In this document: positions 1 to 34,880 of the stretch, one piece after another | Layout of the letters: each line of letters starts with the position of its first letter | Position numbering within the stretch: position 1 is the first letter of the stretch | IMG/VR virus record: IMGVR_UViG_3300024520_000047 | Location: 1-64,000 of that record | Reading direction: 5' to 3' (one strand) | DNA length: 64,000 nt | Program-made: the position numbers and the translations under genes | The notes under the pieces: model-generated | What the model was told of the DNA's origin: nothing | Databases searched by the model: none | The model's input: the letters and a program-made list of their open reading frames with translations, nothing else

Positions 1-64
1 TATTGTATCTTTCGGCAATATCAGACATTACTTCTCCTATATGTTTTGGTTCTCTTTTACTCAT
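1..64 (-). CDS. hypothetical protein, 5' part only (runs off window)
   Basis: ATG at 62-64 inside a perfect junction element; reads MSKREPKHIGEVMSDIAE... open to the window edge. Confidence 0.5.
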   Translation of the reverse strand, partial: MSKREPKHIGEVMSDIAERYN

Positions 65-90
65 CTTTGTTTTGGTTTAGTTAATACTAT

Positions 91-200
91 AGTAGCTATT
101 TATATAACTACTGATTACCTTTTGTTACTGGAGTAGCTATTGATTTTGTAAACATATAAGTATACTTTTTTAGTTTTTTGTAAACGTATATGTATACTTT
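91..200. repeat. short direct repeats in intergenic gap
   Basis: ttttgtaaacRtataWgtatacttt at 144-168 and 176-200 (25 nt, 2 mismatches); agtagctatt at 91-100 and 132-141. Confidence 0.7.
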
Positions 201-444
201 AGTCTTCTTTGTTTTGGTTTAATAGTTTATTAAAATCTTCTACTATATTACTATAGGCTGTTTTTATTCCACCTTTTAATAACGAATCTCCTATCTGTTT
301 TATCTTAAAAACTTCTAAACAATTAATAACCATAGGAATGTTATTGTCTATTCTATATTGTATATCACCTTTATGTATTGGATCTTGATTAGGTTCCACA
401 TACAAACTTTCAGGATATTTTAATAAAAATTTATTTAATGTCAT
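199..444 (-). CDS. hypothetical protein
   Basis: 81-aa ORF starting in a junction element and ending LNQNKED in the next. Confidence 0.7.
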   Translation of the reverse strand: MTLNKFLLKYPESLYVEPNQDPIHKGDIQYRIDNNIPMVINCLEVFKIKQIGDSLLKGGIKTAYSNIVEDFNKLLNQNKED

Positions 445-620
445 CTTTGTTTTGGTTTAATAAAATTCCACAATTTCTTAAAGAAATCAAATATACGTCT
501 AAACAATGTTCTTTTTGGTGGTGTAACTAAATCATATGATAACAACGTATAATCAGTAATGTTACCATCCTTATCAATATTACCCATACCTCTACTTGCT
601 ATGTGTATTTTCTTACTCAT
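441..620 (-). CDS. hypothetical protein (59 aa, absent from ORF track)
   Basis: Hand-translated MSKKIHIASRGMGNIDKDG...WNFIKPKQR*; starts and stops in junction elements. Confidence 0.7.
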   Translation of the reverse strand: MSKKIHIASRGMGNIDKDGNITDYTLLSYDLVTPPKRTLFRRIFDFFKKLWNFIKPKQR

Positions 621-820
621 CTTTGTTTTGGTTTAAATTCTTCTTTTGGATTTGATAAACAAATATCTGACCATCCACGTTTCAATACTCCATGGTACAA
701 ATACACTTGTCTGATAGTTATAGTTTCTAACCAATACCATCCACCATCAAATCTTTTTGGAAACCACAAGAACTTAGTCTTGTATCTATATTCTCCATCT
801 TTTGGTCTATTAATTTTCAT
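617..820 (-). CDS. hypothetical protein
   Basis: 67 aa, ends KPKQR* in junction element. Confidence 0.7.
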   Translation of the reverse strand: MKINRPKDGEYRYKTKFLWFPKRFDGGWYWLETITIRQVYLYHGVLKRGWSDICLSNPKEEFKPKQR

Positions 821-1094
821 CTTTGTTTTGGTTTATTTCTTTAATAGTTAAATTAAACTGTTCTTTTGCGTGATTTAACCCATCTAAATGTATTTGAAAC
901 TCATTCTCGTCCAGCAATTTAGGGTTTATACACTCCACTCTACTTTCACCTTTGATGGGTATAAAATAGGATAAATGTTCTTCCTTATCAGAACTCATTT
1001 TTTTTACTACTTCTTCTATAAAAGTTGGTATCTCACTGTTAATCAAATTACCAGTGTCTATATAATGTACTAAAATTAATTTATCTTTACTCAT
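810..1094 (-). CDS. hypothetical protein
   Basis: 94 aa, ends INQNKDEN through junction element. Confidence 0.7.
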   Translation of the reverse strand: MSKDKLILVHYIDTGNLINSEIPTFIEEVVKKMSSDKEEHLSYFIPIKGESRVECINPKLLDENEFQIHLDGLNHAKEQFNLTIKEINQNKDEN

Positions 1095-1181
1095 CTTTTT
1101 TTTTCTTATTCTGTCTTTTTAAAAAAATCTCAAATCTATAATCCTCATCGGTTAGATATTTCCATATGTGTTTAATTACTC

Positions 1182-1583
1182 TCATCTTATTAATGTTACT
1201 GTTCCTGATTGGGATGTTTTTTTATCTATTTTAAGTTGGTAAACATAGGTTCCAATTGGGCTCGGTTTACCCCTATACGTTCCATCCCAAACTTCATTTA
1301 AATTTGGAGCGGTGAATACTTGTTGACCCCATCGATTATAAATTTCTATTGTGATATGGTTTAACCCCCTACCTATAACTTGAAATGTATCATTTATCCC
1401 ATCATAGTCAGGTGAAAAAACGTTTGGAACAAAAATTGCGTGTTCTTGAGGTACTTTAATGGTATTTGAAATTGAATGGACATGCATTTCATTACTATGA
1501 GCCACTACTCTATAAATGTCATAGTTTTGTCCTAATAAGTTTAAAGATAATAAGGTTAATAGTAGTGTTAATTTATTTTTCAT
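1182..1583 (-). CDS. signal peptide + T9SS type-B (gliding motility-associated, CHU_C-like) C-terminal domain protein
   Basis: Sec signal MKNKLTLLLTLLSLNLLG; C-terminal VPNVFSPDYDGINDTF...IEIYNRWGQQVF...WDG...GTYVY...GTVTLIR matches type-B CTD consensus. Confidence 0.9.
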   Translation of the reverse strand: MKNKLTLLLTLLSLNLLGQNYDIYRVVAHSNEMHVHSISNTIKVPQEHAIFVPNVFSPDYDGINDTFQVIGRGLNHITIEIYNRWGQQVFTAPNLNEVWDGTYRGKPSPIGTYVYQLKIDKKTSQSGTVTLIR

Positions 1584-1589
1584 TTTTGT

Positions 1590-2657
1590 TTAATTATTTA
1601 ATGGTGCTTTAATTGTTGGGTGTGATTGATAGTTTTCTATTTCAAACTGCTCAACCTCTAAATTTTTGAAACTCTCCATTCCTAAATCATCAACTAAATG
1701 AACAGTATATTTCAATGTTGGTAACTCCATAGGTTCTCTTGTCATCTGTTCCTTAGCTTGTTCAATATGATTCTTATATAAATGAACATCACCCAAAGTA
1801 CCAATCAACTCATCAGGAACCATATTAACTTCTTTAGCTATGATTTCAAGCAGTAAACCATAAGATGCTATGTTAAATGGTAAACCTAAGAATGTATCTA
1901 CTGAACGTTGATTCCACATTAGAGAGATTGCTCTGGTTGGGATGTTATGTTTATCACAATTTTCTTTATGTTTTTCTTCGCCATATCTTTCTATTGTTTG
2001 GGGTACAATGTTTTCTTTATACCCTAACAATTTTACCCTCTCTTCCAAACTCAACTCTCTTGTATAAAACTGAAAGAAGTTATGACAAGGTGGAAGTGTC
2101 ATTTGGTCTAACTCACCTACGTTCCAAGCTGATACAATATTTCTTCTAGAATCTGGGTCTGTTTTTAGTAGATTGATTGAGTTTTGGATTTGGTCTGTTT
2201 TTTCTATCCAAACAGCTGAATTGTCTTTTTTAAGCGTTTCCCAATCCCTCCATTGTTTACCATAGATAGGACCTAAATCACCCCACTTCTTAGCGAATTC
2301 ATCATCTGTTTTGATTTTTTCAATAAATGCCTCTTCCTTTGTTATAAATGGACCCCATTCAATTTCTCCGTTATGTTTTTCATAATTCTTTATGGCATCC
2401 CCATTCCAAATATGACAATTATTATCAACAAGGTATTTGATGTTTGTGTCACCACGTAAGAACCATAACAATTCTGTTACAATTCCCTTAAAATACATTT
2501 TCTTTGTTGTTAGTAGAGGATATCCTTCTGACATATCGTGTCTGATTTGTCTTCCAAACACAGATAATGTTCCAGTACCAGTTCGGTCTTGTTTCTCTAC
2601 TCCATTGTCAAGGATATCTTGTAATAGTTCTTGATATTGTTTATCTAGATTGTTCAT
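1590..2657 (-). CDS. thyA: thymidylate synthase
   Basis: DRTGTGT, ELLWFL, LGPIYGKQWR, PDSRR, LPPCH catalytic Cys, QRSVD..LGLPFNIASY, GDVHLY. Confidence 0.98.
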   Translation of the reverse strand: MNNLDKQYQELLQDILDNGVEKQDRTGTGTLSVFGRQIRHDMSEGYPLLTTKKMYFKGIVTELLWFLRGDTNIKYLVDNNCHIWNGDAIKNYEKHNGEIEWGPFITKEEAFIEKIKTDDEFAKKWGDLGPIYGKQWRDWETLKKDNSAVWIEKTDQIQNSINLLKTDPDSRRNIVSAWNVGELDQMTLPPCHNFFQFYTRELSLEERVKLLGYKENIVPQTIERYGEEKHKENCDKHNIPTRAISLMWNQRSVDTFLGLPFNIASYGLLLEIIAKEVNMVPDELIGTLGDVHLYKNHIEQAKEQMTREPMELPTLKYTVHLVDDLGMESFKNLEVEQFEIENYQSHPTIKAPLNN

Positions 2658-2857
2658 CTTTTATTTGGTTTGAGGTTAGTTCTATAAATTTGCCATGCTA
2701 GTTGTGTTGGTTCTATCCCAAATTCTTTTAATTCTTCTTTAAAAGTTATTAAATAAAATTTTAATTCTATTAATTGCCTTTCCCCTTGGAATTGTTGGAG
2801 GATGGTTTTTATTTGGTCTTGATTTATAATTTCGTTTAACTCACTTCTATTTTCCAT
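2654..2857 (-). CDS. hypothetical protein
   Basis: 67-aa ORF; ends KPNKR* in a degenerate junction element overlapping thyA ATG. Confidence 0.65.
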   Translation of the reverse strand: MENRSELNEIINQDQIKTILQQFQGERQLIELKFYLITFKEELKEFGIEPTQLAWQIYRTNLKPNKR

Positions 2858-2859
2858 AA

Positions 2860-3417
2860 TTATACTCTTTTAGAATGTCCAACTATTTGGTAAAAATCTC
2901 TTTTACCCCCACAATAATCTTTAACTAAACATAACAATCCTTTAAACATAAAAGCCCCTGTAGTTTGTTTTTCACATTTACTAAATAATTCTATCAATGT
3001 AGTTAACATTTTAATAGAATAATAACCTGAATTATCTAATTCTCCAAACATATCTACAGCTCGTGAAACATACGTTAAAGTATATGTTTGTCTTTCTTGT
3101 TGGGTCTGGAATGGTGTTATTACATCATACATATTTAATAAATATTCCATATAACTCTGTACTAACTCTTTATCGTATTCACATTTAACTAAAAGGTCTA
3201 CTATCCAATGTGTATGTGAAGGTGTTCTTAATCGTTTTCCTGGTGTTTTATATTTTACTATAAAATCTAAATCTGGTTTTTCCCCCCTATATCCTTGATA
3301 GATAGCTACAAGAGTATCGTCCTCCATTGTCCAATAACTTAGTGGGTAACTACGACGGTCTTCGTTTTTTATTTTATATGATAAATCCATAAAAGAAATA
3401 TAATAACTTTTTATCAA
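2860..3417 (-). CDS. hypothetical protein
   Basis: 185-aa ORF, no recognised motif. Confidence 0.7.
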   Translation of the reverse strand: MIKSYYISFMDLSYKIKNEDRRSYPLSYWTMEDDTLVAIYQGYRGEKPDLDFIVKYKTPGKRLRTPSHTHWIVDLLVKCEYDKELVQSYMEYLLNMYDVITPFQTQQERQTYTLTYVSRAVDMFGELDNSGYYSIKMLTTLIELFSKCEKQTTGAFMFKGLLCLVKDYCGGKRDFYQIVGHSKRV

Positions 3418-3426
3418 TAATTCAAA

Positions 3427-3458
3427 TTTGTTTATATAAAAAATTTTTATTATCTTTG
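3427..3458 (+). promoter_or_regulatory. Bacteroidota housekeeping-sigma promoter
   Basis: TTTG (3427-3430)-N20-TATCTTTG (3451-3458) upstream of 3481. Confidence 0.75.
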
Positions 3459-3480
3459 TAATAAGATAATACCTTCAACT

Positions 3481-3801
3481 ATGAAAAAATTAAAAGGGGA
3501 AAGTTTTAAAACAACTAATATAATAATAAAAATTAGTGCACTTAAATTATTAGTATGGTCAAAAATTCCTACTAAACGTAAACCAAGTCAGGTAGATATT
3601 GGAAATAGGGTGTGGATAGCTGGTGACACTTCTACCAAAAAAACTAAACTTTTAAGAGTCCATAAAAAAGGAGAACCACAATGGCCTAGGTTTGGTGGTT
3701 ATACGGTAATAACCGAAACTGGACTAATGAGAGATTTACATCAACGAGCTGTTAGACTTCATCCTAGTAATTTTATCAAGAAAAGAAAATCTAAACGTTA
3801 A
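3481..3801 (+). CDS. basic hypothetical protein
   Basis: 106-aa ORF downstream of host-type promoter. Confidence 0.65.
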   Translation: MKKLKGESFKTTNIIIKISALKLLVWSKIPTKRKPSQVDIGNRVWIAGDTSTKKTKLLRVHKKGEPQWPRFGGYTVITETGLMRDLHQRAVRLHPSNFIKKRKSKR

Positions 3802-3988
3802 AATATTTTTTCTTGATAAAATCAAAAGTTCTTTTACTAGCAACCAATGGCCACAACATTGCACTAAAAAAAGTTTCTAACACATTATTGTATTTATTTT
3901 TAAAAAAATACACATCGGCCACTACCCACAATAGCCCTTTCACAATGTAAGCCACACATAAGAATAATACCATCATTAAGATATCCAC
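3791..3988 (-). CDS. small membrane protein
   Basis: Hydrophobic N-terminus and WPL motif. Confidence 0.55.
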   Translation of the reverse strand: MDILMMVLFLCVAYIVKGLLWVVADVYFFKNKYNNVLETFFSAMLWPLVASKRTFDFIKKKYFNV

Positions 3989-4066
3989 AATTAATCTTTA
4001 TTTATTCGTCTATTGACATACATAAGTAATAGGCCTACCCCAAACAAAACAATAATTACAATTATA

Positions 4067-4243
4067 TTAACCATTTGATTTTAATATTCTACTATAGGCT
4101 TCTTCCCATTTATCCCTAATTTCTTTATGTGAAAATTCTTTTTCACTATCTAATTGTTTTAACATATTAAAAAATTCTTCCTTTTTATCTATACTATTAA
4201 TTTGTTCTGTAATTATAAAAAAAAAATCATCCCAATGTCCCAT
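4067..4243 (-). CDS. hypothetical protein (58 aa, absent from ORF track)
   Basis: Hand-translated MGHWDDFFFIITEQINSIDK...RILKSNG*; TAATG overlap with upstream ORF. Confidence 0.55.
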   Translation of the reverse strand: MGHWDDFFFIITEQINSIDKKEEFFNMLKQLDSEKEFSHKEIRDKWEEAYSRILKSNG

Positions 4244-4485
4244 TATTTTTTTTCTTTTTCACATTTTATTTCATAAGGATTTTTTAGTGGTTCTTGGGTT
4301 GGGATTGGGATTGATAAATCATGCATTCTTTTTACTACCGCCCCATCAAAAGGCTTTTCTACTTTTTTATCAAATTTAACCGTATTAAGTGTATCTTCTA
4401 TCATATCCCACGTTTTTTTGGTGGGTATGAATTGGGTGGAGTCTACTATTCCCTTTAACCAAAAAACAAATTCATTTGCCGTCAT
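4243..4485 (-). CDS. hypothetical protein
   Basis: MTANEFVFWLKG start, a style often seen in small phage proteins. Confidence 0.7.
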   Translation of the reverse strand: MTANEFVFWLKGIVDSTQFIPTKKTWDMIEDTLNTVKFDKKVEKPFDGAVVKRMHDLSIPIPTQEPLKNPYEIKCEKEKK

Positions 4486-4649
4486 ATCTTTAATTTTTTT
4501 AATAACGGTAACCCCATTATTGATTCATATAGTAATTGTATTGTTACCTTTATTATAATAAACGGTAATGAAATTCCTACAATAACTAAACATAAAACTA
4601 TCTGGATAAAAAAAGAAATTAATTCTAGTATAGCCTTTATTATTTTCAT
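4482..4649 (-). CDS. small membrane protein (55 aa, absent from ORF track)
   Basis: MKIIKAILELISFFIQIVLCLVIVGISLPFII...; ATGA overlaps at both ends. Confidence 0.55.
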   Translation of the reverse strand: MKIIKAILELISFFIQIVLCLVIVGISLPFIIIKVTIQLLYESIMGLPLLKKLKI

Positions 4650-4861
4650 CGTGGCAATATTCTAGTCACTTCTTCATTTATTTGATTTAAAATCTTATTA
4701 TAGTAGTCTACTTTTTTTTGATTTTTACTATCATACTTTATAAGTGTTGCCGATTTGGATTGTTCCTCTAGGGATATTTGAGGTAGAGCCTTAATATGTT
4801 GGGTCACAGTGTCATGTTTTTTCATCAACCATGTATAATATTCTGCTTTAGTTTTTTTCAT
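4646..4861 (-). CDS. hypothetical protein
   Basis: 71-aa ORF in coupled run. Confidence 0.6.
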   Translation of the reverse strand: MKKTKAEYYTWLMKKHDTVTQHIKALPQISLEEQSKSATLIKYDSKNQKKVDYYNKILNQINEEVTRILPR

Positions 4862-5334
4862 TTGTTACTTTTTAATTTATTAAATGGTTTATTAATTTTT
4901 AATTCTTTTTTTAATGTTTGGTTTTTTTTATTTATTTTAGTGATATATTCTGATATCTCAAATTCTGTTTTAGTTCTTAGTCGTGAATAAACTTTTATGT
5001 GGTCTAACGGTGTAAGAGAGGTAGCTAAAAAATATAATCTATGTGTACCATCTCTAATAATATATTCACTTTCACCCCACTCATTAATATCGTGTGTCTG
5101 GATTACCCTTATCTCTCTTACAATTCCTATTCTTTTAATTCTGGATTCTAATCGTTCCCACTTATAACCTTTTTCTTTTTCTTTAATATAACGTTCTTTT
5201 AATTTTTTTTTATTAAAATTTTTAATTTGTCTTAATCTAATTTTTTTAATTTTATATTTAAAATTAAAAAACATGTAAATTTTATAAAAAAATGCCCCAA
5301 TAATTATTAAACTGTCTTTTAAATACTCTAACAT
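4858..5334 (-). CDS. hypothetical protein, possible ParB/Srx-like domain
   Basis: YIIRDGTHRLYFLA resembles ParB/Srx DGxHR motif; basic low-complexity flanks. Confidence 0.4.
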   Translation of the reverse strand: MLEYLKDSLIIIGAFFYKIYMFFNFKYKIKKIRLRQIKNFNKKKLKERYIKEKEKGYKWERLESRIKRIGIVREIRVIQTHDINEWGESEYIIRDGTHRLYFLATSLTPLDHIKVYSRLRTKTEFEISEYITKINKKNQTLKKELKINKPFNKLKSNK

Positions 5335-5365
5335 TTTCTAAATATATAGAAGAAAAGAATTTTGT

Positions 5366-8300
5366 CTACTCTTCGTCCCATTCAATTTCGTCGGATTCTC
5401 TAGGCCAACTATAAGGAATATCGGTTCCCGGTCTAATATCCTGACTCCCATAAGAATCTTGTTGTCTTTTCCATGGATGTCCGGGGTCTCTATTAATAAC
5501 GGCATTCTCTAAACCAAATAATTTAGCTAATTCCTTCATTTCATCTTTTAGGGTATTAAATCTTTCTCTCCATGAAGTTTCATAAACCTTCCCATCTGGA
5601 TTAATATAATCCGAGTCTCTTCTATTATAGTCTTCAACTGCTTCAGGATGTAACTCTGCGAAGTCTTCCTCATACCTATAAAAGTCGGGCCATTTTGCAT
5701 GGTATCCTATATCTCTCATAGGTATTTCTTCCATGGAGTAAGGGTCATCCAACTTCCCCACTATATCATTCCCCCAATCATCATACTCCTCTTTTTTCTT
5801 ATAAAACTTTAAGATGTCCTTCCAAATATTATCCGCCGTTACACTATCGTCGAGTACTGGAACATAAACATCAATGCGTGCTTCGCCTGGCATATTCCCC
5901 GGCACCGTACTTAGATAATAATCAAACCCCAAAAAATTAAATGGAGAATTCTTCACCAAATAATTGTTCAATGCGGTCACTGGTTCCTGTGGTGTCGGGT
6001 CCACATTCATAGCATAATGTTGTTTACCTCTTCTAATGGACCATGGTGGTTCACCTTTGGGGTGGTCTAGTTCTTGCTTTTTGTTGTCTCTATTAAAGGG
6101 AAAATCCTGTTCATTCAATTCTTCTCTTCTAAAGGTGGGATTATAAATCCATGTATCAGTGGGGTATATTCTTTTCTCTCTTCCCATCCATTTGTTTACT
6201 GCTGTCCCAAACCTCTTATCTTCGTCGGTGAGGCCTATAGGTTCTATTTCATAATATTTTAAATCAGCATCAGGACCTTCCCAGTTTTCGGGTTGTCGAA
6301 ATTTAATAGCCGTAACCACATAAGGTTCATATAAGTCAGGTTTTCTTCCCCCTGTCGTATATTTTCTTCTCCACCCTATACTCTCTATTACCATTATCTC
6401 ATCTCCTATCATTAATTGTGGGTTTACTTTATCTTGAGATTGTTCATTTAATTCTTCTCCTCTAGAGTCTGGTCTTAACATCCATGTGTCGTTAGGATAA
6501 AGATGTGTCAATCTCCTCCATCCTCCACCCGCCCTTAAATCGGCTTGCATTTCTTCAGGGGTCAATTCTTTACGTTCTATTTCATAATGTACGTATTTGT
6601 CGTTAAAGGTATTGTTTTTTATTGATTCTTTGATTTTCACTACTACATAAGGGACATATATTTCTGGTGGGTTGAAACTTGCTCCTTCAGGTTGGTTGTG
6701 TTGAAGTACGAGTATCTCATCTCCTATCATTAATTGGGGATTAAGTTTATCTTTAGTATGTTCTTGTAATACTTCGGGGTCTTCTACTTTTACCCATTTA
6801 TCAAAATAGGGTGCAATCACTTTATAACCTACCCTTCTCCCTTCTGTGTATCTCAATAACTCGTCCTCATCTTTCTTATCCATTAACAACCATAATAGTT
6901 GGGTACCTTCATCTATGTCGAGACCAGACCCTTCATATCCTCTAGTCCAGCCATATCTGGGACTACCTCCACCTCTTCCCTCTGTACTCCACTTCATTTC
7001 CTCATTCTCATCTATTACAGTATAAGTGTGATATAACTTGGGGAATCTTTCAGAAGTAATAATCTGCATACCATTCATAAACTCCCGTCTTTGGTCACTA
7101 TCTTCATCTACATCTATAACCTTAATTTTATCACCCGGTTTTAAAGGAGGATTAACTTCTACTTTCTTACTATCTTGTTCTTGTAAAGATGGTGGTGTGG
7201 GGGACATAATGTACCTCACTTCATTAGGATACAACCAACGAAAATCGTACCCACCTTTTTTGTGTGACTTCTTCCACTTGTTAATTTCAGATAACGGTAA
7301 AAGAAGATATCTCTTCCCTCGTTCCTCCACTCTTTTTCCGTATGCCCGTTCCCTCCCGTGTTCCTCCGTTTCTGGCGTTTTTTGTATAATCCTATAAGGG
7401 ACGAATAAGTCTGGTTGTGTAGTATGGGTTTCTATGTCATCTCGATGGTACCAACCCCTTCCTTCGTGCCACTTAAACCCCATTAACTCTGCAGTCTCTT
7501 CATAATTATGCCAATCTCCTTGCAAGGTATCTTTGACTTCCTGATTCTCCATAAATTCCTTTATTTCGTCGTCCGTCATATATTCAACATCTGGGTCTTC
7601 ATATGCCACTACCGTTATCGTATCTCCCACATTTATGTAGGGATTAACTTTTTCTTGATGTTCTTGTAAAGATTTTGGGGTGGGGGGAGAAATGATGTAT
7701 TTTTCTTCCGAAGGGTACAGCCAACGATAATCTAATCCCTTCACTCGTCCAGAGGCCCATATCTCCCTCTTTTCGTCCTCATGTTCTTCCACTTCAGGTA
7801 GTGTTAAAAGAAGATATCTCATCACATCTCCTTCTTTCCATCCTATTTCTACTTTTTGTACAATCCTATAGGGTACGAATAAGTCTGGATTCTGGTCATT
7901 TAACTCCTTTTTATGATACCATCCCTTACCTGGCCATCGTGTATAGCCCATTAACTCTGCAGTCTCTTCAAAATTATGCCAATCTCCTTCCAATGTATCT
8001 TGGAGGTCCTGATTCTCCATAAATTCCTTTATTTCGTCGTCTGTCATATATTCAACATCTGGGTCTTCATGTGCAATTACAGTTACAGTGTCCCCTACAT
8101 CAATTGGGGGATTAACTTTTTCTTCCTGTTCTTGTAATATTTCTTCTTCCTTATTTACTATTATCCATTGGTAAGGGCCTGATGCCTTTAATTCTTCCTT
8201 TCCGTCCTTTTCCCACTCTTGCCTTCTCCCCCTCTTTCTTTCTTCTCTACTTATTCCATATCCCCATATATCTCCTTTTATTTCTCCTTTCCATGGGTCT

Positions 8301-15807: not shown

Positions 15808-15817
15808 CTATTTTTTT

Positions 15818-18103: not shown

Positions 18104-18118
18104 CTTTGTTTTGGTTTT
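17940..18118 (-). repeat. gene-junction element cluster 2
   Basis: 18096-18117 at ORF boundary; 17940-17959 (TTAAACCAAAACGAAGATGA) inside ORF 17828. Confidence 0.8.
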
Positions 18119-18626
18119 TAAATTCTTCAAACAAATATCTATCTTTAATAAAATCTTCTATATCTGTATTGTCAAACTTTTTCTTTGTCTCTTCTAATTC
18201 TTTAATCCTTTTTCTTTTAGGTGTCATACCTTCTTCATATTCATCTAACGTATTACTTTTTTCGTATTTCCACTTAATATGATTTTCTCTAAAATTAATT
18301 GTATTACTAATTGAATATATTTCATTTTCAATATTCTCTTTAATTGATTGGTAATCTTCTAACCTATGTTCTCTATGTTTCTTTAATTGTTTATTAATTA
18401 TTTCTTCAGCGTTGTCAGGTAAATTCCTATCATCTATAAGTTTAAATAATAAATCTCTAACGACACACAAATCTTCTTCCATAGATTGTACATCATCCTC
18501 CAATTCACATATAGTAATTTCGTTTTTAGATTTTCTAACGGGTGTGTGTTGTGATTCTAAGTTTCTATAATCTTCTTCTGTCATTAGTCCCACTCCAGTC
18601 CCTTTTCCGTCTGCTCTACAAGGCAT
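18096..18626 (-). CDS. coiled-coil hypothetical protein
   Basis: 176 aa, ends KNQNKDE* in junction element. Confidence 0.7.
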   Translation of the reverse strand: MPCRADGKGTGVGLMTEEDYRNLESQHTPVRKSKNEITICELEDDVQSMEEDLCVVRDLLFKLIDDRNLPDNAEEIINKQLKKHREHRLEDYQSIKENIENEIYSISNTINFRENHIKWKYEKSNTLDEYEEGMTPKRKRIKELEETKKKFDNTDIEDFIKDRYLFEEFKNQNKDE

Positions 18627-18989: not shown

Positions 18990-19062
18990 AGCGGAAGGAT
19001 AGGATTTGAACCTCCGTCCCCATACTGGTAGTATGGTGCTTTACCAATTAAGCTACTCCCGC
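18990..19062 (-). tRNA. tRNA-Gly, anticodon ACC (atypical; one-nt bulge in T-stem; CCA not encoded)
   Basis: GCGGGAG acceptor/CTTCCGC + U73; D-arm GCTT/AAGC; anticodon arm CCATA-CTACCAG-TATGG; T-loop TTCAAAT. Confidence 0.8.
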
Positions 19063-19066
19063 TTAT

Positions 19067-19309: not shown

Positions 19310-19313
19310 AAGG

Positions 19314-19430: not shown

Positions 19431-20000
19431 ATGAATCCCAACCGTATAAAATCTATCCGCCGCACCTATATTATATTTTCTATAATAGTAGGAATTGTTG
19501 CTCCTATTTTATGCTATTGGTTAATTCCTCATTTTGACATAAAACACGACCCTTTATCTAAATTTGGTATCTCCGAACCCACTTCCCATATCTGGTTAGT
19601 CTCATTAATGTTTATTGCCATTGGATTATGGTTAAATGGGGAATATCGGATTGGGGAAATGATTAAGAAAAAAAAATGGCGTCCTTTATTGAAGTGGTTA
19701 CTGAGAATTTCTACTTTTTCATTATTATTAATGGCAGTAATAGATATGAGTTGGCACTGGACACATAAAACTTTAGCTTTACTTTTTTTCTGTGGATATA
19801 ATGTTTTTGTGTTTGCCTTTGGTATTGTGCGTTCTTTAACTTATGTTAGAAGAGGAATGTTTTCAGTAATAATGGCTACGCTTATGTTATCCACATCTTT
19901 ATTAATTCTTCCATTTCCAAGTTATGGTGTTGCTGAAATATCATATATATTTCTGATAGTGCTGTGGAACACTAAAGTCTTATTTAGGAAAAAATTATAA
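19431..20000 (+). CDS. polytopic membrane protein (DUF998-like)
   Basis: ~6 hydrophobic helices; PLSKFG and H..LALLFF motifs resemble DUF998. Confidence 0.6.
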   Translation: MNPNRIKSIRRTYIIFSIIVGIVAPILCYWLIPHFDIKHDPLSKFGISEPTSHIWLVSLMFIAIGLWLNGEYRIGEMIKKKKWRPLLKWLLRISTFSLLLMAVIDMSWHWTHKTLALLFFCGYNVFVFAFGIVRSLTYVRRGMFSVIMATLMLSTSLLILPFPSYGVAEISYIFLIVLWNTKVLFRKKL

Positions 20001-27368: not shown

Positions 27369-27387
27369 TATCCATAAATATCTGAGA

Positions 27388-27606: not shown

Positions 27607-27608
27607 GA

Positions 27609-28496: not shown

Positions 28497-28499
28497 AAT

Positions 28500-28925: not shown

Positions 28926-28932
28926 TATTAAC

Positions 28933-29394: not shown

Positions 29395-29410
29395 TAATAT
29401 ATTATTTTTT

Positions 29411-30019
29411 TTAATCTAAAATTTTATCCACCAACCCATATTCTAAACATTTTTCAGCATTCCACCATAAATCATGTTTTAAAATTTCCTCTAATTTAGA
29501 AACAGGAACTTTAGTATATTCTTTATATAACTTATTAATCATTTCCATTAACTTTTTATTATTTTCCATATCATCTACTAATTCACTATATTTTCCCCAT
29601 GACGAAGAGCTTAACTGATGTATTAACATATAGGAATGTCGATGTATCCACCTTTCCTTGCCCACTACACTAATCATTGTTCCTGCACTAGCCGCACACC
29701 CCTCAATAATTGTAATGACCTCACAAGAGGTATTTCTAATTGTGTCCAGTGTGGATAAACCCGCAAAAATACTTCCACCATATGAGTTAATGTGTAAATA
29801 AATATATGGTAATGGTATCCCCATAGAAAGAGAATGTTTTTGTAAGTGAATGTCTAACTCTCTAATTGCTTTATTAAGTTCCAACATTTTAGACCGTTCC
29901 ACTTCAGAATAAAAATATATATGGTTATCTATTGCTGTAATTTGATTGTTGTCATTATTAGAATCTAAATTATCAGATTTTGTTTTTTCTTTTGTTTTGC
30001 CCCAATATGGTTCTCTCAT
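29411..30019 (-). CDS. ClpP-family serine protease (divergent)
   Basis: INSYGGS, AASAG (Ser), LIHQ (His), HDLWW (Asp). Confidence 0.9.
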   Translation of the reverse strand: MREPYWGKTKEKTKSDNLDSNNDNNQITAIDNHIYFYSEVERSKMLELNKAIRELDIHLQKHSLSMGIPLPYIYLHINSYGGSIFAGLSTLDTIRNTSCEVITIIEGCAASAGTMISVVGKERWIHRHSYMLIHQLSSSSWGKYSELVDDMENNKKLMEMINKLYKEYTKVPVSKLEEILKHDLWWNAEKCLEYGLVDKILD

Positions 30020-30258
30020 AAATTTTCTAATTTAATTGTATATTCATTTATTGTTTGTAGCTTAACTGATGGGTAACAAACTTGCCCATAATTATAATGT
30101 GGTATTGTAATTGTTGTGGTATCATAATCTATAAAGCTATATTGTGGACATTGGTTACATGGTTTTGCTTTTTTAGTTGTAGAACACGAACCAAGTACCA
30201 TGGATAATACACACATAATAGTTCCTAAAATTAATAAAAATTTTAATAAATCTTTCAT
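30016..30258 (-). CDS. small lipoprotein
   Basis: Signal peptide with lipobox LGS-C. Confidence 0.65.
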   Translation of the reverse strand: MKDLLKFLLILGTIMCVLSMVLGSCSTTKKAKPCNQCPQYSFIDYDTTTITIPHYNYGQVCYPSVKLQTINEYTIKLENL

Positions 30259-30917
30259 TTTCTTTTTCCTATAATTTCATCTATTACACCATAGTCTAAT
30301 GCCGCTTCTGCGTCTAACCATAAATCTCTCTGGGCATCTTTCTCCACTCTTTTTGGTGTTTTACCACAACACTTTCCTAATATTTCAAAAAGAAGTTTAT
30401 TAGTTTTTTCCCATTCCTCCATAGTTATTCTAGCATCTTGTATATTTCCGATTGCCCCACCACTAGATTGGTGTAACATGGTCTGACTATACCTTAAAGA
30501 ATTTCTTTTACCCTTAGTACCTGCAGCCAATAATACGGACCCCATGGAAGCCGCCATACCGGTATTGACTGTTCTAATGTCACATTTAATATAATCCATA
30601 ACATCTATTATACCTAACCCCGCTTTAACAGAACCTCCCGGTGAATCAATATATAAAGTAATATCATCGTTATTTACAGTATCTAAAAACATAAGTTGGG
30701 ATTGTAAAACATGTCCAGTCATGGATGTAATCGGTCCAGCTACCCAAATAATTCTTTCCATCATCAATCTAGAAAAAATATCCATTTGTGTTACTCTCAA
30801 TTCTCTTTCTTCCAATATATAAGGTGTCATGCTATTTTCATACCCCTGTAAATCTCCCTTATTAACACCATAATGTTGGGTAGCATATTTCTGAAATTCT
30901 TTATAATCTATATTCAT
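30255..30917 (-). CDS. clpP: ATP-dependent Clp protease proteolytic subunit
   Basis: MDIFSRLMMERII, DSPGGSV, AASMG, MLHQ, RDLWL. Confidence 0.95.
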   Translation of the reverse strand: MNIDYKEFQKYATQHYGVNKGDLQGYENSMTPYILEERELRVTQMDIFSRLMMERIIWVAGPITSMTGHVLQSQLMFLDTVNNDDITLYIDSPGGSVKAGLGIIDVMDYIKCDIRTVNTGMAASMGSVLLAAGTKGKRNSLRYSQTMLHQSSGGAIGNIQDARITMEEWEKTNKLLFEILGKCCGKTPKRVEKDAQRDLWLDAEAALDYGVIDEIIGKRK

Positions 30918-31177
30918 CTATTTTTTTTTAATTTATTAGTAATTTTCCCCCACCAAGATATTTTTTTCTTCCCATAAGTCGTCTCGGGGACAATCGGTAA
31001 GACATCGTCTAAAAATTGTTTATACCTTTCTGGTTGTATCAAATTCATTATATAAGTATGGGTCCTCCCTAAGCTACGTAAGCTTCGATAAAAATTTCTA
31101 TTAATTTTAGTAGATGGTGAAGTTATTTTTATTTTCATTGGGGGTAAATTATGTCTACTGTAATATGGTATTTTCAC
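30914..31177 (-). CDS. basic hypothetical protein
   Basis: 87-aa ORF in coupled run. Confidence 0.55.
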   Translation of the reverse strand: MKIPYYSRHNLPPMKIKITSPSTKINRNFYRSLRSLGRTHTYIMNLIQPERYKQFLDDVLPIVPETTYGKKKISWWGKITNKLKKNR

Positions 31178-31179
31178 AA

Positions 31180-31509
31180 TTAATTATTTATATATTGTTT
31201 ATGATATTTTGTTCCTATAGTTACCAAGGAATCATGTTTTTGATAATATTCTTCTAAAGTTTCAAATCCGTAAATTTCTTTTACATCTTCTAATAAAATA
31301 CTGTCTTTGAAAGCCTTTCTTTCTGCATCTAAAATAGAATCACACGCATCATCTTCATATGTTGATTCCTTTACATGTTGTATTTCTATAACTTCTTTTT
31401 CTATTGGGGTTCCTGAGTCAAAAAAATATATATAACATATGACATATATAATTCCTACCCACCCAAAAAAATAAAATATTAACGAATCTTTACGTTGGTG
31501 TTTTTTCAT
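31180..31509 (-). CDS. membrane-anchored hypothetical protein
   Basis: Single N-terminal TM helix. Confidence 0.6.
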   Translation of the reverse strand: MKKHQRKDSLIFYFFGWVGIIYVICYIYFFDSGTPIEKEVIEIQHVKESTYEDDACDSILDAERKAFKDSILLEDVKEIYGFETLEEYYQKHDSLVTIGTKYHKQYINN

Positions 31510-31585
31510 AAATAAAAAATAAGAAAATTTAAGAAAGAAGACAAGAGTATTTTATTAAAACTATATTAATCTTAGGTAGTTAGTA

Positions 31586-32365
31586 TTACCTTGGGGTTCT
31601 CTTAGTTGGTTTGTGAAAATTTGTAGTGGTTGGTTTACTACGAGAAGGTGTGTAATTTGTTCTTACATTATTTGCTTTATAATGTGTTTGTTTTGTAGGT
31701 TTATATGAATGTGTTTTTACTGGTGGTCGTGAAACATTATTCCTAACAATCGGTTTGGGTTTAGAGTAATTGTACGTTTTAACTACGTTATTACTTGGTT
31801 TTGGTCTTTGGTATGTGGTTATTGCCTTTACGGGTTTATTACGATTTACATCTTTTTTTATGTAATCTTTTCCTTTCTCTATTGGTTTAGGTTTGATATT
31901 GATGTTTGAAGTTTGTGTAGTTTTTCTATTATTGGAGGACATACTTTTTCTATGTCCGTAATAATAGTTATTTGGGTAATAATTACTATAACAATAATAG
32001 TTTGAATAGTAACTGGGCCATGAGTACCAATAAGCGTAGTTATTATAGGGATACCCGTACCAACCATAATAACTGTTATATCCCCAATAAAATGAAAAAT
32101 TATTATAATAACTATAAGAATACCAGTAGGGATTATAATATGACCAATAAGATGCGTAATATGACCTCCTATGAAATCTATTAATTCTTGAACTATAATT
32201 AGTGTAATAATTATTAGTCACATATACCGATTTCTCTAATGTATCAGATTCTAAAGTATCTAAAAGTTCATAATCATCTACGGTATAATATACATCATCA
32301 TAATATTCTTGTGAATAAGTAGATAATGTAATTACAATAAAAAAAATCCCTAATAATTTTTTCAT
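31586..32365 (-). CDS. secreted Tyr/Asn/Ser-rich low-complexity protein with basic Pro-rich tail (start moved to MKKLLG)
   Basis: Signal peptide MKKLLGIFFIVITLSTYS, then YYDDVYY, Y/W/N/S-rich tract, K/R/P/T-rich tail. Confidence 0.75.
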   Translation of the reverse strand: MKKLLGIFFIVITLSTYSQEYYDDVYYTVDDYELLDTLESDTLEKSVYVTNNYYTNYSSRINRFHRRSYYASYWSYYNPYWYSYSYYNNFSFYWGYNSYYGWYGYPYNNYAYWYSWPSYYSNYYCYSNYYPNNYYYGHRKSMSSNNRKTTQTSNINIKPKPIEKGKDYIKKDVNRNKPVKAITTYQRPKPSNNVVKTYNYSKPKPIVRNNVSRPPVKTHSYKPTKQTHYKANNVRTNYTPSRSKPTTTNFHKPTKRTPR

Positions 32366-32396
32366 ACTATTAGGGATTATACAATAATCGTACCAC

Positions 32397-32657
32397 TTAT
32401 TCTTCGTACTCTCTTTCTCTTTCGTATTCACAAATATCTTCTTCCCATAAAGGAAGGATACTGTCACAACATTCAAAAATAAAATCAGTAATGTCTACAT
32501 CTTTTCCATCATTACAAATTAAGACTTTTTCTATCTCTATTTCAGTATGTGGGGGAGTACCACTGCCATCTGGATGATACCGCACACCCGGGTCATAGTC
32601 ATAACTATACTCTATAGTTACTGTATTGTCCCCATAATCTTTTTCTAATATTCCCAT
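32397..32657 (-). CDS. acidic hypothetical protein
   Basis: 86-aa ORF. Confidence 0.65.
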   Translation of the reverse strand: MGILEKDYGDNTVTIEYSYDYDPGVRYHPDGSGTPPHTEIEIEKVLICNDGKDVDITDFIFECCDSILPLWEEDICEYEREREYEE

Positions 32658-32660
32658 TTT

Positions 32661-33023
32661 TTATAGTTTTATATACTCATCTTTGTTTTGGTTTATATAT
32701 GTTAGATATAATTCCCATAGGCTATATCGTTCACCTTTCTTACCCATATCATATGAAAGTTCCATTAATCTACAAACATCATCTTTACCTAATAGTGGAT
32801 ATTTATTTTTTTCTTTATACAATATCTTTTTGACGTTTTCCATTTTCATCAGATGTTCATCGTACCAATTAAGTGATAACGAAGCCCATATAGTTGTAAT
32901 TACAGTTACCGATAATGGACATACTAAATTTAGGTACCAACTTTCAGATATTTCATATACACCAACACCTAAAATTACCATAAGTGGGATATAAATTAAT
33001 GTTGTTATTAAAATCTTATTCAT
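32661..33023 (-). CDS. membrane protein
   Basis: Two TM segments; starts in a junction element and reads through another as INQNKDE. Confidence 0.7.
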   Translation of the reverse strand: MNKILITTLIYIPLMVILGVGVYEISESWYLNLVCPLSVTVITTIWASLSLNWYDEHLMKMENVKKILYKEKNKYPLLGKDDVCRLMELSYDMGKKGERYSLWELYLTYINQNKDEYIKL

Positions 33024-33160
33024 CTTTGTTTTGGTTTAATAAATGGTTAAACGCAGTCTGTCTTCTGGTGTTTTCATCGGTACGACTACGTGAGTTAATC
33101 CGATGGTTTTAATTTTTCCGCACAACCATTTTTATAGCTTTATCTACTTTTTTTACCATA

Positions 33161-33319
33161 TTAAATATTCCATACATTGTTGGTCTCTTTGTCCCTACAT
33201 CTGATTCTTTTGACAGAATCTAGAATACTCAAAATGAAGTTATCCATTTCTTGTTCGGTGGCAAACTCTCGTGAGTTTAATTTACCATCTTGGTTTATAT
33301 ATGCTACTCGGTATCTCAT
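33161..33319 (-). CDS. hypothetical protein (52 aa, absent from ORF track)
   Basis: MRYRVAYINQDGKLNSREF...; ATG 4 nt after TATATTTG. Confidence 0.6.
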   Translation of the reverse strand: MRYRVAYINQDGKLNSREFATEQEMDNFILSILDSVKRIRCRDKETNNVWNI

Positions 33320-33323
33320 AATA

Positions 33324-33354
33324 CAAATATAGGTATTTTTTTTAGTTTTACAAA
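33324..33354 (-). promoter_or_regulatory. Bacteroidota sigma promoter
   Basis: TTTG-N19-TATATTTG. Confidence 0.75.
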
Positions 33355-33360
33355 ATTAAT

Positions 33361-33750
33361 TTAAATTTTTTTCCATCTACCATCGGTAAGAAGTATAAAA
33401 GTCCCAACATAAGTTTGAGTCCATTGAGTAGGTCCAATTAAACTCAGAAAAAAAGTAGTAGAAGTTCTTTCATATAAATAATAAGGTTCATTAATCAAAG
33501 GATGAAAATTATAATCTGCATTGTAAATTATTTGAGTCCAGTGATATTCTTCCAATAAAGATTCATACTCCTTTTTAAATTCCGCAAACTTCCCCTCAAA
33601 AAAATTATGTGCTTTATAACTACCTTCCCTTCCCTTTGTTAAAGGAACAAAAGGAGGGGACCCTAAAGAAGTGGGGTAAGGTTTGGTGTGGCTGTCAAAA
33701 CAGTCTTCTTTAGCATTATAAACTACATTATCTGGAATTTCTTTACCCAT
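33361..33750 (-). CDS. DUF2452-like protein
   Basis: PYPTSLGSPPF...IYNADYNFHP...YYLY...FLSLIGP.QW. Confidence 0.75.
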   Translation of the reverse strand: MGKEIPDNVVYNAKEDCFDSHTKPYPTSLGSPPFVPLTKGREGSYKAHNFFEGKFAEFKKEYESLLEEYHWTQIIYNADYNFHPLINEPYYLYERTSTTFFLSLIGPTQWTQTYVGTFILLTDGRWKKI

Positions 33751-33981
33751 TTATTCAAAAATTAATGTTAACAAATGGGTGTAGGAACTATATGGTGTTT
33801 CATCATAAAACCCATCCGAGAAATAACTTTGGGTGTGTGTTACATTTAATTCATATTTATGGTGTATGTATTGTCCAAATCTTAAATGATGTTTATCTCT
33901 TCCATTACCATATTCGTGAATCCAGAATAAATATTCCTTTTCTAACCTCTTTAATGTAAGTTTATTTTCCGCTTTACTCAT
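33751..33981 (-). CDS. hypothetical protein
   Basis: 76-aa ORF with LRFGQ motif. Confidence 0.6.
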   Translation of the reverse strand: MSKAENKLTLKRLEKEYLFWIHEYGNGRDKHHLRFGQYIHHKYELNVTHTQSYFSDGFYDETPYSSYTHLLTLIFE

Positions 33982-34264
33982 CTTTTTTTCTATTTCTTAT
34001 TATTAAATTTCCATCCATTATCACTCTAATTTGAGAATAGGGGTATTCACATTGAAGCCAATCACCACATCCGTATTCATGTTTTAAAGAAATACAAAAC
34101 CTTAATCCTCTTTCATATAAGGGTAACGCTTCTTTATATTTTCTTTGGTAGAAGAGTGTGTCTGCAACATTTATTATTCTGGTGTATTGTTTCACCTCAT
34201 CTAATGATTGTGCAGATGTATTAAATATACCCACCAAAAATAATATAAAACTAATTTTTTTCAT
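33974..34264 (-). CDS. secreted protein with TPR-like helix
   Basis: Signal peptide MKKISFILFLVGIFNTSA-Q; ADTLFYQRKYKEALPLYERG. Confidence 0.6.
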   Translation of the reverse strand: MKKISFILFLVGIFNTSAQSLDEVKQYTRIINVADTLFYQRKYKEALPLYERGLRFCISLKHEYGCGDWLQCEYPYSQIRVIMDGNLIIRNRKKDE

Positions 34265-34276
34265 CTTTGTTTTGGT

Positions 34277-34444
34277 TTAATTGAGTCTTTCTTTAGTTAT
34301 TGTTGTTATAAATCTTATAAAGTCACTAGCTAACCATAAATCTAATCTATTCTCCCCACATATCCTCATTGAAGTTTTAGTTCGTTTTAAAAACCGTTCA
34401 CCTCTAGTATTCTTTACAAATGTTTCAAATTCTTCTTTACTCAT
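34277..34444 (-). CDS. hypothetical protein (55 aa, absent from ORF track)
   Basis: MSKEEFETFVK...KERLN*; stops at the first TAA of a junction element. Confidence 0.65.
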   Translation of the reverse strand: MSKEEFETFVKNTRGERFLKRTKTSMRICGENRLDLWLASDFIRFITTITKERLN

Positions 34445-34688
34445 CTTCTTTTTGGTTTAATTCTAATTCTCTGAATCTAAATTGTTTACTTGGGTAATCA
34501 TCTAATTCTACCCAATTAAATCTACCATTAAAATACAACCATCCTTTCTTACCAATATACTGTTCATCATGTTCGGTTACATCATCGTTAATGGTTACAC
34601 GTTTTCTCATTTTGTATATTGGTTTCATCACAACATCAAGGACTTCCCATCCGTTTTGTGTTATATCACCTTTTTTGTAATTACTCAT
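34437..34688 (-). CDS. hypothetical protein
   Basis: 83 aa, ends LNQKEDE* in junction element. Confidence 0.7.
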   Translation of the reverse strand: MSNYKKGDITQNGWEVLDVVMKPIYKMRKRVTINDDVTEHDEQYIGKKGWLYFNGRFNWVELDDYPSKQFRFRELELNQKEDE

Positions 34689-34860
34689 CTTTGTTTTGGT
34701 TTAATTCTTCTACAACTTTATTATAGAATTCATTATCTGATTCTATTTTCTGTTTGAACTCATCAAATGAATGTAAGTAAGTTCCTGGTGGTGTTGCTGG
34801 TAACCAATTGAATCCCCATTTCATTAATGCCTGTTCATATAGTTTTTCTAATTTACTCAT
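34681..34860 (-). CDS. hypothetical protein (59 aa, absent from ORF track)
   Basis: MSKLEKLYEQALMKWG...EELNQNKDE*; junction elements at both ends. Confidence 0.7.
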   Translation of the reverse strand: MSKLEKLYEQALMKWGFNWLPATPPGTYLHSFDEFKQKIESDNEFYNKVVEELNQNKDE

Positions 34861-34880
34861 CTTCTTTTGGTTTTAATGGT

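Follow-up and report, generated by a model that had tools for sequence, protein, structure and literature searches.

The first 64,000 nucleotides of a 246-kb uncultured jumbo phage (IMG/VR record IMGVR_UViG_3300024520_000047; hereafter the window) contain 13 copies of the 23-nt sequence TAAACCAAAACAAAGATGAGTAA, all on the minus strand, together with a degenerate copy in front of thyA, against none expected. The 23-mer with up to 3 mismatches gave 10 hits (0 in shuffled sequence), whereas the 16-mer AACCAAAACAAAGATG is exact 9 times and has 4 more copies with 1 or 2 mismatches. The initial annotation had claimed a 19-nt core that is exact in 8 copies, and this holds for TAAACCAAAACAAAGATGA, while the alternative 19-mer ACCAAAACAAAGATGAGTA is exact only 5 times. 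The copies lie in three clusters of small open reading frames (ORFs) at 57-835, 17936-18118 and 32673-34876. The element places a TAA in frame with the ATG, 15 nt upstream of it, a TGA overlapping the ATG, and a further TAA at +6, so that stops are present in all three frames. Stops in all three frames occur in 1.2% of random 23-mers of this strand and at 4% of the other gene starts in the window.

In the first cluster, an exact 23-mer at 57-79 provides the ATG (64-62) of an ORF that runs off the start of the window. The copy at 199-221 is a variant longer by 3 nt in which the ATG has been lost (AAGACT); its last TAA ends ORF 199-444, and it is followed by noncoding DNA at 80-198. The TGA of the copy at 437-459 ends ORF 441-620 and its ATG starts ORF 199-444, and the TGA of the exact copy at 613-635 ends ORF 617-820 and its ATG starts ORF 441-620. 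The copy at 813-835 starts ORF 617-820, but here the upstream ORF (810-1094) ends at a TAA at +9. The degenerate element (AACCAAATAAAAGATG) at 2650-2672 precedes thyA (1590-2657; Pfam Thymidylat_synt), a gene that is also preceded by the element in 7 other contigs. In the second cluster, the copy at 17936-17958 is vestigial; it lies inside ORF 17828-18103, starts only a 2-codon mini-ORF and has lost its frame-2 stop, so that two cassettes are fused. The copy at 18096-18118 lacks the in-frame TAA, but its last TAA ends ORF 18096-18626 and its ATG starts ORF 17828-18103.

In the third cluster, the copy at 32673-32695, at the 3' edge of cassette 32661-33023, is likewise vestigial and starts a 3-codon mini-ORF, whereas the copy at 33016-33038 starts the cassette ORF 32661-33023 itself and is preceded by a 120-nt intergenic stretch. 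At 34257-34279, the first TAA ends ORF 34277-34444 and the ATG starts ORF 33974-34264. At 34437-34459 (2 mismatches), the last TAA ends ORF 34437-34688 and the ATG starts ORF 34277-34444, and at 34681-34703 (an exact 23-mer) the last TAA ends ORF 34681-34860 and the ATG starts ORF 34437-34688. The 13th copy, at 34853-34876, is an indel variant, TAAAACCAAAAGAAGATGAGTAAA, that starts ORF 34681-34860. Two minus-strand matches to the Bacteroidota-type promoter (TTTG-N-TAnnTTTG) were found at the heads of the array, one at 35480-35511, upstream of backbone gene 34881-35447 and the cassettes behind it, and one at 33324-33354, directly before the ATG at 33319, which heads the second part of the array. 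The observation of a repeated connector whose three stops are all in use is confirmed, with the vestigial and variant copies as corrections and the end of ORF 199-444 as an additional use of the last TAA.

The element is not a feature of this genome alone. The exact 18-mer occurs in more than 120 other IMG/VR loci (a lower bound), on contigs of 4-380 kb, but in 596 Gb of cellular genomes (185,579 species genomes) it was found at only 49 loci, mostly single and at about the level of chance, with no prophage copies among them, and it was absent from GenBank phages. In 210 independent viral copies, the downstream ORF (median, 60 codons) is at least 40 codons long in 173, against a median of 16 codons for the cellular hits, indicating that the element marks real starts. 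When clustered, 227 downstream ORFs fell into 162 unrelated clusters, which include ThyA, a C5 methylase, UvdE and a PD-(D/E)XK nuclease, and the element is restricted to nonstructural early/replication regions. The upstream ORF ends at one of the three built-in stops in 154 of the 210 junctions (73%): 38 at the TAA at -15, 45 at the TGA at +2 and 71 at the stop at +6 (TAA, TGA or TAG). Stops that are not used are nevertheless kept, with A at +4 in about 99% of copies and a stop at +6 in 55-61%, against 12% at other starts, and spacer variants differ by 3 nt, which keeps the TAA in frame. A second sequence "dialect" (dialect B), AAACAATAGAAAGTTATGA[AG]TAAA, has the same layout and occurs in more than 117 loci, providing an independent replicate; ATGARTAAA is common to both dialects, which can sit side by side in single arrays.

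The absence of indel breakpoints at the element in related phages had been named in advance as grounds for rejecting the idea, together with a level of identity among copies no greater than convergent selection for strong translation initiation would produce; when related contigs were compared, this test did not refute the idea. Cassettes 84-99% identical are shared with otherwise unrelated contigs, with homology ending inside the element. The cassette ORF at 617-820 (67 amino acids, phrog_11031) is 97-99% identical to one in an unrelated 44.6-kb contig (L171), with homology bounded by the element at both ends. In total, L171 shares three window cassettes (97%, 96% and 84% identical), each bounded by the element and in a different order, and nothing else. 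Another contig, L112, has one cassette that is 91% identical to its counterpart in the window, at a different position, while the backbone is only 67-76% identical. Conversely, close relatives of the window phage (L296, L297 and L180) lack the arrays altogether, and one breakpoint lies exactly at the element's TAA. A block of six cassette ORFs on the minus strand (33371-34874) is absent from L296 and L297, and the whole stretch 30918-34880 is replaced by about 540 nt in L180. The left breakpoint of a 1.5-kb insertion relative to L296 and L297 lies at the variant element 34853-34876, directly after the TAA stop of backbone gene 34881-35447, and homology to these relatives resumes just 3' of the vestigial copy at 32673-32695. 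However, the right end of the insertion is at a promoter rather than at an element. Across the collected loci, 36% of homology ends fall in the element, against 2% at random, and 54% of motif junctions are homology breakpoints, against 7% of other gene starts, although these statistics are biased because the loci were collected by the motif, which is itself shared sequence. Of 117 evaluable shared segments, 15 are bounded by the element at both ends and 53 have neither end in it.

The translational context of the element was also examined, and no hairpin forms at the element. Folding of six copies with 90 nt of context left the element unpaired in 5 of 6, with 5 of 6 z-scores near 0, and the 15 nt upstream of the ATG (UAAACCAAAACAAAG) hold a single U and a single G, so they cannot pair with themselves. 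The element is more unpaired than other ORF starts (0.64 against 0.57; P = 1e-7). The host is a Bacteroidota lacking Shine-Dalgarno (SD) recognition, as supported by a T9SS sorting domain and by the SD-free gene starts of the phage, although the specific host was not identified. The initial annotation noted that the element has A at -3, -6, -12 and -13; this is correct, and these are the positions named for Flavobacterium johnsoniae (PMC6847099). As an argument that the element is simply an optimal Kozak-like initiation region it is weak, because the C residues at -5, -10 and -11 are atypical of the other starts of this phage and dialect B has A at only two of the four positions.

We consider it somewhat more likely than not that the element is a standardized intercistronic junction carried by accessory-gene cassettes of virulent phages that infect Bacteroidota, comprising an in-frame stop, an unstructured spacer of 12-15 nt made only of A, C and G, and an ATG overlapped by TGA with a further stop at +6. 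In this view, on a polycistronic mRNA made from host-type promoters, a ribosome finishing the upstream small ORF in any frame would terminate within 15 nt of the next ATG and restart there without an SD sequence. As the same 23-26 nt sit at hundreds of junctions, within a genome and across coinfecting phages, they would also act as the patch of homology at which cassettes are inserted, deleted and exchanged, and every such crossover would yield a translatable joint whatever the frames. The anatomy of the element, its virus-specific distribution, the frame-independent use of its stops and the mosaic breakpoints are established by our comparisons, whereas reinitiation, and crossover within the element itself, are inferred from pattern and geometry; no expression or ribosome data were available, and dependence of downstream translation on the upstream ORF was not measured. 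A homology of 23-26 nt is short for homologous recombination, no recombinase was identified in the window, of which not every ORF was scanned, and the occurrence of both dialects in single arrays means that not every joint can have arisen by crossover between identical elements. The proposal of the initial annotation, that the element is a recombination and translational-coupling module allowing any ORF to be dropped into an operon regardless of frame, is therefore supported only in part.

Two alternative hypotheses are unlikely but survive about equally well. First, the element could be the binding site of a sequence-specific trans-acting factor, either an RNA-binding translational operator of the T4 RegA type or a DNA-binding regulator of the stoperator type, that switches a whole class of early accessory genes on or off, with the stops and mosaic boundaries as by-products of tight gene packing. 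The exact conservation over 16-26 nt includes bases that play no part as stops (CC at -11/-10, C at -5, G at -1) and that are atypical of the phage's other starts; the element is also asymmetric, in one orientation, confined to nonstructural regions and at about chance level in cellular genomes, and the same unresolved idea was raised for start-associated sequences (PMC3203893). In contrast, no protein family is shared by more than 14 of 116 motif-bearing contigs in the DNA seen, the element occurs in very different backbones while close relatives of this phage lack it, and with two dialects in one array a single specificity would not cover an operon. Second, the element could be only a very good SD-independent translation start that travels with each gene, its identity across phages reflecting common descent and purifying selection, with recombination occurring anywhere and selection merely keeping joints at gene borders. 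The favored A residues, the unstructured region, the ATGARTAAA common to both dialects and the general tendency of phage mosaic joints to lie at gene borders are consistent with this. However, cellular genomes, including Bacteroidota, essentially never use the element, and its atypical C residues, the divergence of dialect B, the retention of unused stops far above background and the excess of breakpoints at motif junctions (with the bias noted above) argue against it.

Less likely still, the element could be a promoter for a phage-encoded or phage-modified RNA polymerase, giving each cassette its own leaderless or near-leaderless transcript, like the repeated promoter cassettes of T4-type phages or halovirus HF2. 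A conserved block running from about 15 nt upstream to 8 nt downstream of a fixed point is promoter sized, repeated intergenic sequences in viruses are often promoters (PMC2839356, PMC8707807), and this phage does use leaderless-type host promoters, with TAnnTTTG 4 nt before the ATG. Yet the element has no host -33/-7 boxes, the arrays already sit behind host-type promoters, 3-nt spacer variants would shift the transcription start relative to the ATG, and two dialects occur in one array; no RNA polymerase was recognized among the window proteins searched, although only about a quarter of the genome was seen. Finally, although all sequences are metagenome assemblies in which repeats shared between co-occurring phages can cause misjoins, chimeric assembly is very unlikely to explain the mosaic pattern, as the element is shorter than reads and the usual final k-mers, shared cassettes come from different samples and are 84-99% rather than 100% identical, and the anatomy is coherent in more than 200 copies.

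Of known systems, the element resembles the promoter-early stem-loop (PeSL) cassettes of T4-type phages (Arbiol et al. 2010, PMC2839356; PMC4122927), in which short conserved regulatory sequences flank small ORFans in hyperplastic regions, indels and replacements between relatives map to them, and they are proposed to supply homology for modular shuffling while bringing expression signals along. PeSLs, however, are intergenic, span about 50-100 bp and consist of a sigma70-type promoter and a stem-loop terminator, so that each ORFan is its own transcription unit; excised minicircles, formed by recombination between flanking PeSLs, were not looked for here. Our element contains neither promoter boxes (TTTG/TAnnTTTG) nor a stem-loop terminator, overlaps the stop of one gene and the start of the next, would work, if at all, at the level of translation, and is shared across unrelated phage backbones. 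Start-associated sequences of Cluster K mycobacteriophages (Pope et al. 2011, PMC3203893) are likewise short asymmetric repeats in one orientation that abut the start codons (mostly ATG) of nonstructural genes from unrelated families, sometimes contain the upstream stop, are absent from host genomes and have an unproven function suspected to lie in translation initiation. They are 13 bp long, lie 3-7 bp upstream of the start, contain the SD core and are confined to one phage cluster, with no cassette exchange described, whereas our element has no GGAG-like run, extends through the ATG to +9, has stops in all three frames and is spread over many unrelated contigs.

Like integron cassettes, the arrays comprise promoterless, co-oriented, mostly small ORFs of unrelated function, separated by a recognizable repeated site and read from an upstream promoter, with host-type promoters occurring only at the array heads. 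attC sites are imperfect palindromes of 57-141 nt that are recombined as folded single strands by an IntI integrase; in contrast, the element has no inverted repeat and is part of the coding and initiation sequence. No integrase turned up among about 50 window proteins scanned, but as not every ORF was scanned and most of the genome was not seen, this does not settle whether an IntI with attI and Pc lies nearby. [quoted passage not shown] The same geometry is seen in termination-reinitiation signals such as the calicivirus TURBS, which works by pairing to 18S rRNA; complementarity of the element to rRNA was not examined. Stoperators of Cluster A mycobacteriophages (PMC9283540) are also numerous short asymmetric sites at gene ends, oriented with transcription, but they are 13-bp DNA sites bound by the phage's own immunity repressor, blocking elongation, and specific to an immunity group. 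Here, no repressor is known and binding was not assayed, the phages appear virulent, and the site is shared across groups.

We tentatively speculate that virulent phages of aquatic Bacteroidota, jumbo phages included, may share an open gene-cassette market that needs no recombinase, in which standardized stop/start junctions, in at least two dialects with the same three-frame-stop layout, would act at once as universal translational adaptors and as recombination sites. ORFans and auxiliary genes could then circulate between unrelated phage lineages and be expressed on arrival, a translation-level counterpart of the integron. A junction of this kind would extend the PeSL idea from transcription signals to translation signals and from one phage family to a cross-lineage exchange community. 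It would provide a sequence tag for finding accessory genes, including possible antidefense genes, in viromes, and would offer a compact portable junction for building polycistronic constructs in Flavobacteriia and Bacteroides. It would also give a concrete, testable mechanism for how the huge pool of small phage ORFans is shuffled and immediately expressed in hosts that lack SD recognition and would explain the mosaic, hyperplastic regions of uncultured Bacteroidota phages.

The recurrence of the motif described in the initial annotation held up, and it lies far beyond chance. The 23-mer TAAACCAAAACAAAGATGAGTAA with up to 3 mismatches occurs 10 times, and the 16-mer AACCAAAACAAAGATG is exact 9 times, with four more copies at 1-2 mismatches. 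Every copy is on the minus strand, which is the coding strand of these regions. A comparison of copy number with chance expectation had been named at the outset as a check, and dinucleotide-preserving shuffles gave 0 occurrences of the 23-mer. The 19-nt core said in the initial annotation to be exact in 8 copies is TAAACCAAAACAAAGATGA, and that count is correct. Likewise, the three stops are used exactly as claimed there, with the first TAA ending ORF 34277-34444, the TGA ending ORFs 441-620 and 617-820, and the last TAA ending ORFs 18096-18626, 34437-34688 and 34681-34860. Stops in all three frames occur in only 1.2% of random 23-mers of this strand and at 4% of the other gene starts. Some copies are decayed: copy 199-221 has lost its ATG, copies 32673-32695 and 17936-17958 start 3- and 2-codon mini-ORFs, respectively, copy 18096-18118 lacks the in-frame TAA, and copy 34853-34876 is an indel variant. 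Flanks upstream of the element are unrelated coding sequence. Two intergenic stretches within the arrays carry further repeats. The first, a non-coding stretch at 80-198 (minus strand) between two copies of the element, has two 25-nt direct repeats (144-168 and 176-200, with a GTATAC palindrome) and two 19-nt repeats (85-103 and 126-144). Its segment of about 65 nt that ends in AGCTACTATAGTATTA, just before the element, is conserved in six other contigs (L068, L044, L062, L113, L037 and L028) and contains the palindrome TACTATAGTA, which resembles the ACTATAG core of T7/SP6 promoters; it may be a promoter or an operator. The second, a 120-nt intergenic stretch at 33039-33160 (minus strand) before copy 33016-33038, contains the inverted repeat CATCGG...CCGATG, which may be a terminator or an RNA structure inside the array.

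The window covers positions 1-64000 of the 245,874-bp record IMGVR_UViG_3300024520_000047, and the same 188-aa gene and array layout recur on a 293-kb metagenome contig that is apparently the same phage. Megablast of 40 kb of the window returned no match to any GenBank phage. The window encodes ThyA, a tail lysozyme/M23 protein and two giant ORFs of 3039 and 2457 aa (5366-14485 and 19995-27368, both minus strand) with no informative family match; in PHROGs, the only hit was a short one of unknown function in the second ORF. Two ClpP-like protease genes (29411-30019 and 30255-30917, minus strand) lie 240 nt apart, separated by an 80-aa ORF, next to thioredoxin-, NUDIX-, Mom-, glutaredoxin-, HAD- and glutamine-synthetase-like genes. 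A tRNA-Gly at 18991-19063 (minus strand), which ARAGORN reads with anticodon ACC, unusual for tRNA-Gly, lies next to the second cassette cluster. The host is inferred to be Bacteroidota on three grounds. [quoted passage not shown] Second, the Bacteroidota promoter pattern TTTG-N17-23-TAnnTTTG is enriched (14 against 4.5 expected) and sits before gene starts. At the minus-strand gene starts at 19309, 33319, 35900, 37741 and 45760, a TAnnTTTG box lies only 4 nt before the ATG (e.g., TTATTATCTTTGTATTATG), with TTTG about 20 nt upstream; these look like host-type promoters that would give leaderless or nearly leaderless mRNAs. Third, ORF 1182-1583 (minus strand) encodes a 133-aa protein with a CHU_C type IX secretion sorting domain (E=5e-21), which points both to a Bacteroidota host and to a phage protein exported by the host T9SS. 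Host prediction by CRISPR spacers was not carried out.

The element is shared by many phages and is virus specific. The exact 18-mer TAAACCAAAACAAAGATG occurs in more than 120 IMG/VR loci, a minimum count, on contigs that range from 4 to 380 kb, and copies are often clustered. One 242-kb contig (L087; IMGVR_UViG_3300025770_000870, positions 1-6529) begins with 28 copies in 6.2 kb, and the ORFs between them are only about 35-130 codons long. In contrast, 596 Gb of bacterial and archaeal genomes hold only 49 loci, where a uniform random expectation is, by our calculation, about 17. Most of these are single copies inside long ORFs, with a median downstream ORF of 16 codons and no conserved +4 base, and the few multicopy cases are MAG contigs of inconsistent taxonomy that look misbinned. 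Distant and short-query BLAST searches found no GenBank phage with the cassettes or the element. The element is therefore not a host-type initiation region, and no prophage-like copies that might have assigned a host turned up in the species genomes scanned.

Across 210 independent viral copies, only the element is conserved: T at -16 (64%), then the fixed 18-mer, then A at +4 (97%) and G/T/A/A/A at 60-76%. A longer repeat hidden in the flanks was ruled out, as there is no conservation upstream of -3 in 202 copies. The ATG opens an ORF of at least 40 codons in 173 of 210 copies (median, 60). The 227 downstream ORFs form 162 unrelated clusters with no within-locus paralogy, which rules out paralogous expansion as the source of the repeat. 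The larger ones are accessory enzymes, namely ThyA, a C5 methylase, UvdE, a PD-(D/E)XK nuclease and an SPL-like protein. A PHROGs search of the cassette proteins for function gave only two hits, both of unknown function. One cassette family (ORF 617-820) is under purifying selection, with dN/dS of about 0.3, so these are real genes. Upstream ORFs end at TAA -15 in 38 copies, at the overlapping TGA in 45 and at the +6 stop in 71 (TAA, 46; TGA, 19; TAG, 6), which together account for 73% of all junctions. Stops that the local upstream ORF does not need are still kept, with A at +4 in about 99% and the +6 stop in 55-61% against 12% at other starts. A common variant has 3 extra nt (…CAAAGAAGATG, 24 copies), and another reads TAAAACCAAAAGAAGATG; both keep the TAA in frame.

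Homologues of ORF 617-820 in six other contigs are joined by a different repeat, AAACAATAGAAAGTTATGA[AG]TAAA, which constitutes a second "dialect" with the same layout of in-frame stop, ATGA and RTAA. It too occurs in more than 117 IMG/VR loci, again a minimum (observed in loci L172-L177 and L181-L258 as well as L083, L101 and L217). This repeat has an in-frame TAG at -9, ATGA (A at +4 in 97%) and [A/G]TAA at +5 to +8 (about 80%), and upstream ORFs end at the +6 stop (62), at TAG -9 (22) or at TGA (5). It has A at only two of the four "Kozak-like" positions, so what the two dialects share is the stop/start geometry and ATGARTAAA, not an optimal upstream sequence. In the three loci L083, L101 and L217, both dialects occur side by side in single arrays.

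A lack of indel breakpoints at the element among related phages had been put forward in the initial annotation as evidence that would overturn its recombination reading, and such breakpoints were found. L171, a 44.6-kb contig from another sample, shares exactly three segments with the whole 64-kb window. These are the cassettes 617-820 (96.9%), 34681-34860 (96.0%) and 34277-34444 (83.9%); each is bounded by the element, and they lie in a different order and neighborhood. In the contig L112, the 34681-34860 cassette is 91% identical, against 67-76% for the backbone, and it sits between different backbone genes. Among segments of at least 80 nt and 80% identity between different contigs, 36% of ends fall in the element, against 2% of random positions. 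Among 117 evaluable segments at 85% identity or more, 15 are bounded by the element at both ends (125-529 nt; 89-99% identity) and 49 at one end. While 54% of motif junctions, against 7% of other gene starts, are homology breakpoints, this comparison is biased by how the loci were collected. Contigs L296 and L297 are close relatives of the window phage (95-97% in the flanking gene, about 85% backbone) with no copy of the element. Compared with them, the window carries a 1.5-kb block of six cassettes whose left breakpoint is exactly after the TAA of gene 34881-35447, although its right breakpoint is at a promoter, not at an element. The window also has a replaced slot holding cassette 32661-33023, where homology resumes just 3' of the vestigial copy. 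L180, a contig with 70-81% backbone identity, has about 540 nt where the window has the whole 4-kb array. Crossover points within the element were not mapped at nucleotide resolution, and presence of the element was not set against a backbone phylogeny.

In the way it would work, the element resembles PeSL cassettes (PMC2839356), and in appearance it resembles start-associated sequences (PMC3203893), but it lacks defining features of both: it has no promoter, stem-loop or SD, and it is not confined to one cluster. It also lacks those of attC, as there is no palindrome. In the searchable literature, we found no description of the sequence or of such a junction in Bacteroidota phages. We regard the junction as real, widespread, apparently undescribed and directly testable, with precedents in the systems named here but without their promoter, stem-loop or SD.

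Alternative hypotheses are that the element is an operator for a trans-acting factor, that it is purely an initiation region, that it is a phage promoter or that the mosaic pattern is an assembly artifact. A search for a protein family shared by all motif-bearing contigs, as a candidate trans factor, found none present in more than 14 of 116 contigs within the DNA examined. A purely initiating role is likewise possible but doubtful. The promoter hypothesis is less likely still, and one form of it, an early promoter of a crAss-like virion RNA polymerase, was rejected, as the giant ORFs lack the DFD[IV]D motif and the phi14:2 study reports no common motif at early transcripts. An assembly artifact is the least likely of the four.

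The interpretation offered in the initial annotation, a recombination and translational-coupling module, is partly supported. No hairpin or other RNA or DNA structure was found at the element, and an Rfam search for known RNA families found only the tRNA. The region from -18 to +9 is more unpaired than other ORF starts (0.64 against 0.57; p=1e-7); complementarity to 16S rRNA was not examined. The arrays lie downstream of host-type promoters, and in other contigs they sit among replication and repair genes, including AAA_24 (Pfam PF13479) ATPases. The most economical reading is a junction that terminates any frame and reinitiates the next cistron without SD pairing and that doubles as the homology patch for cassette exchange. 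While the anatomy of the junction, its distribution and the mosaic breakpoints were observed directly, reinitiation and crossover within the 23 nt are inferences from them. In this view, the design makes every crossover productive, which would explain why unused stops and the 3-nt spacing are preserved in these phages.
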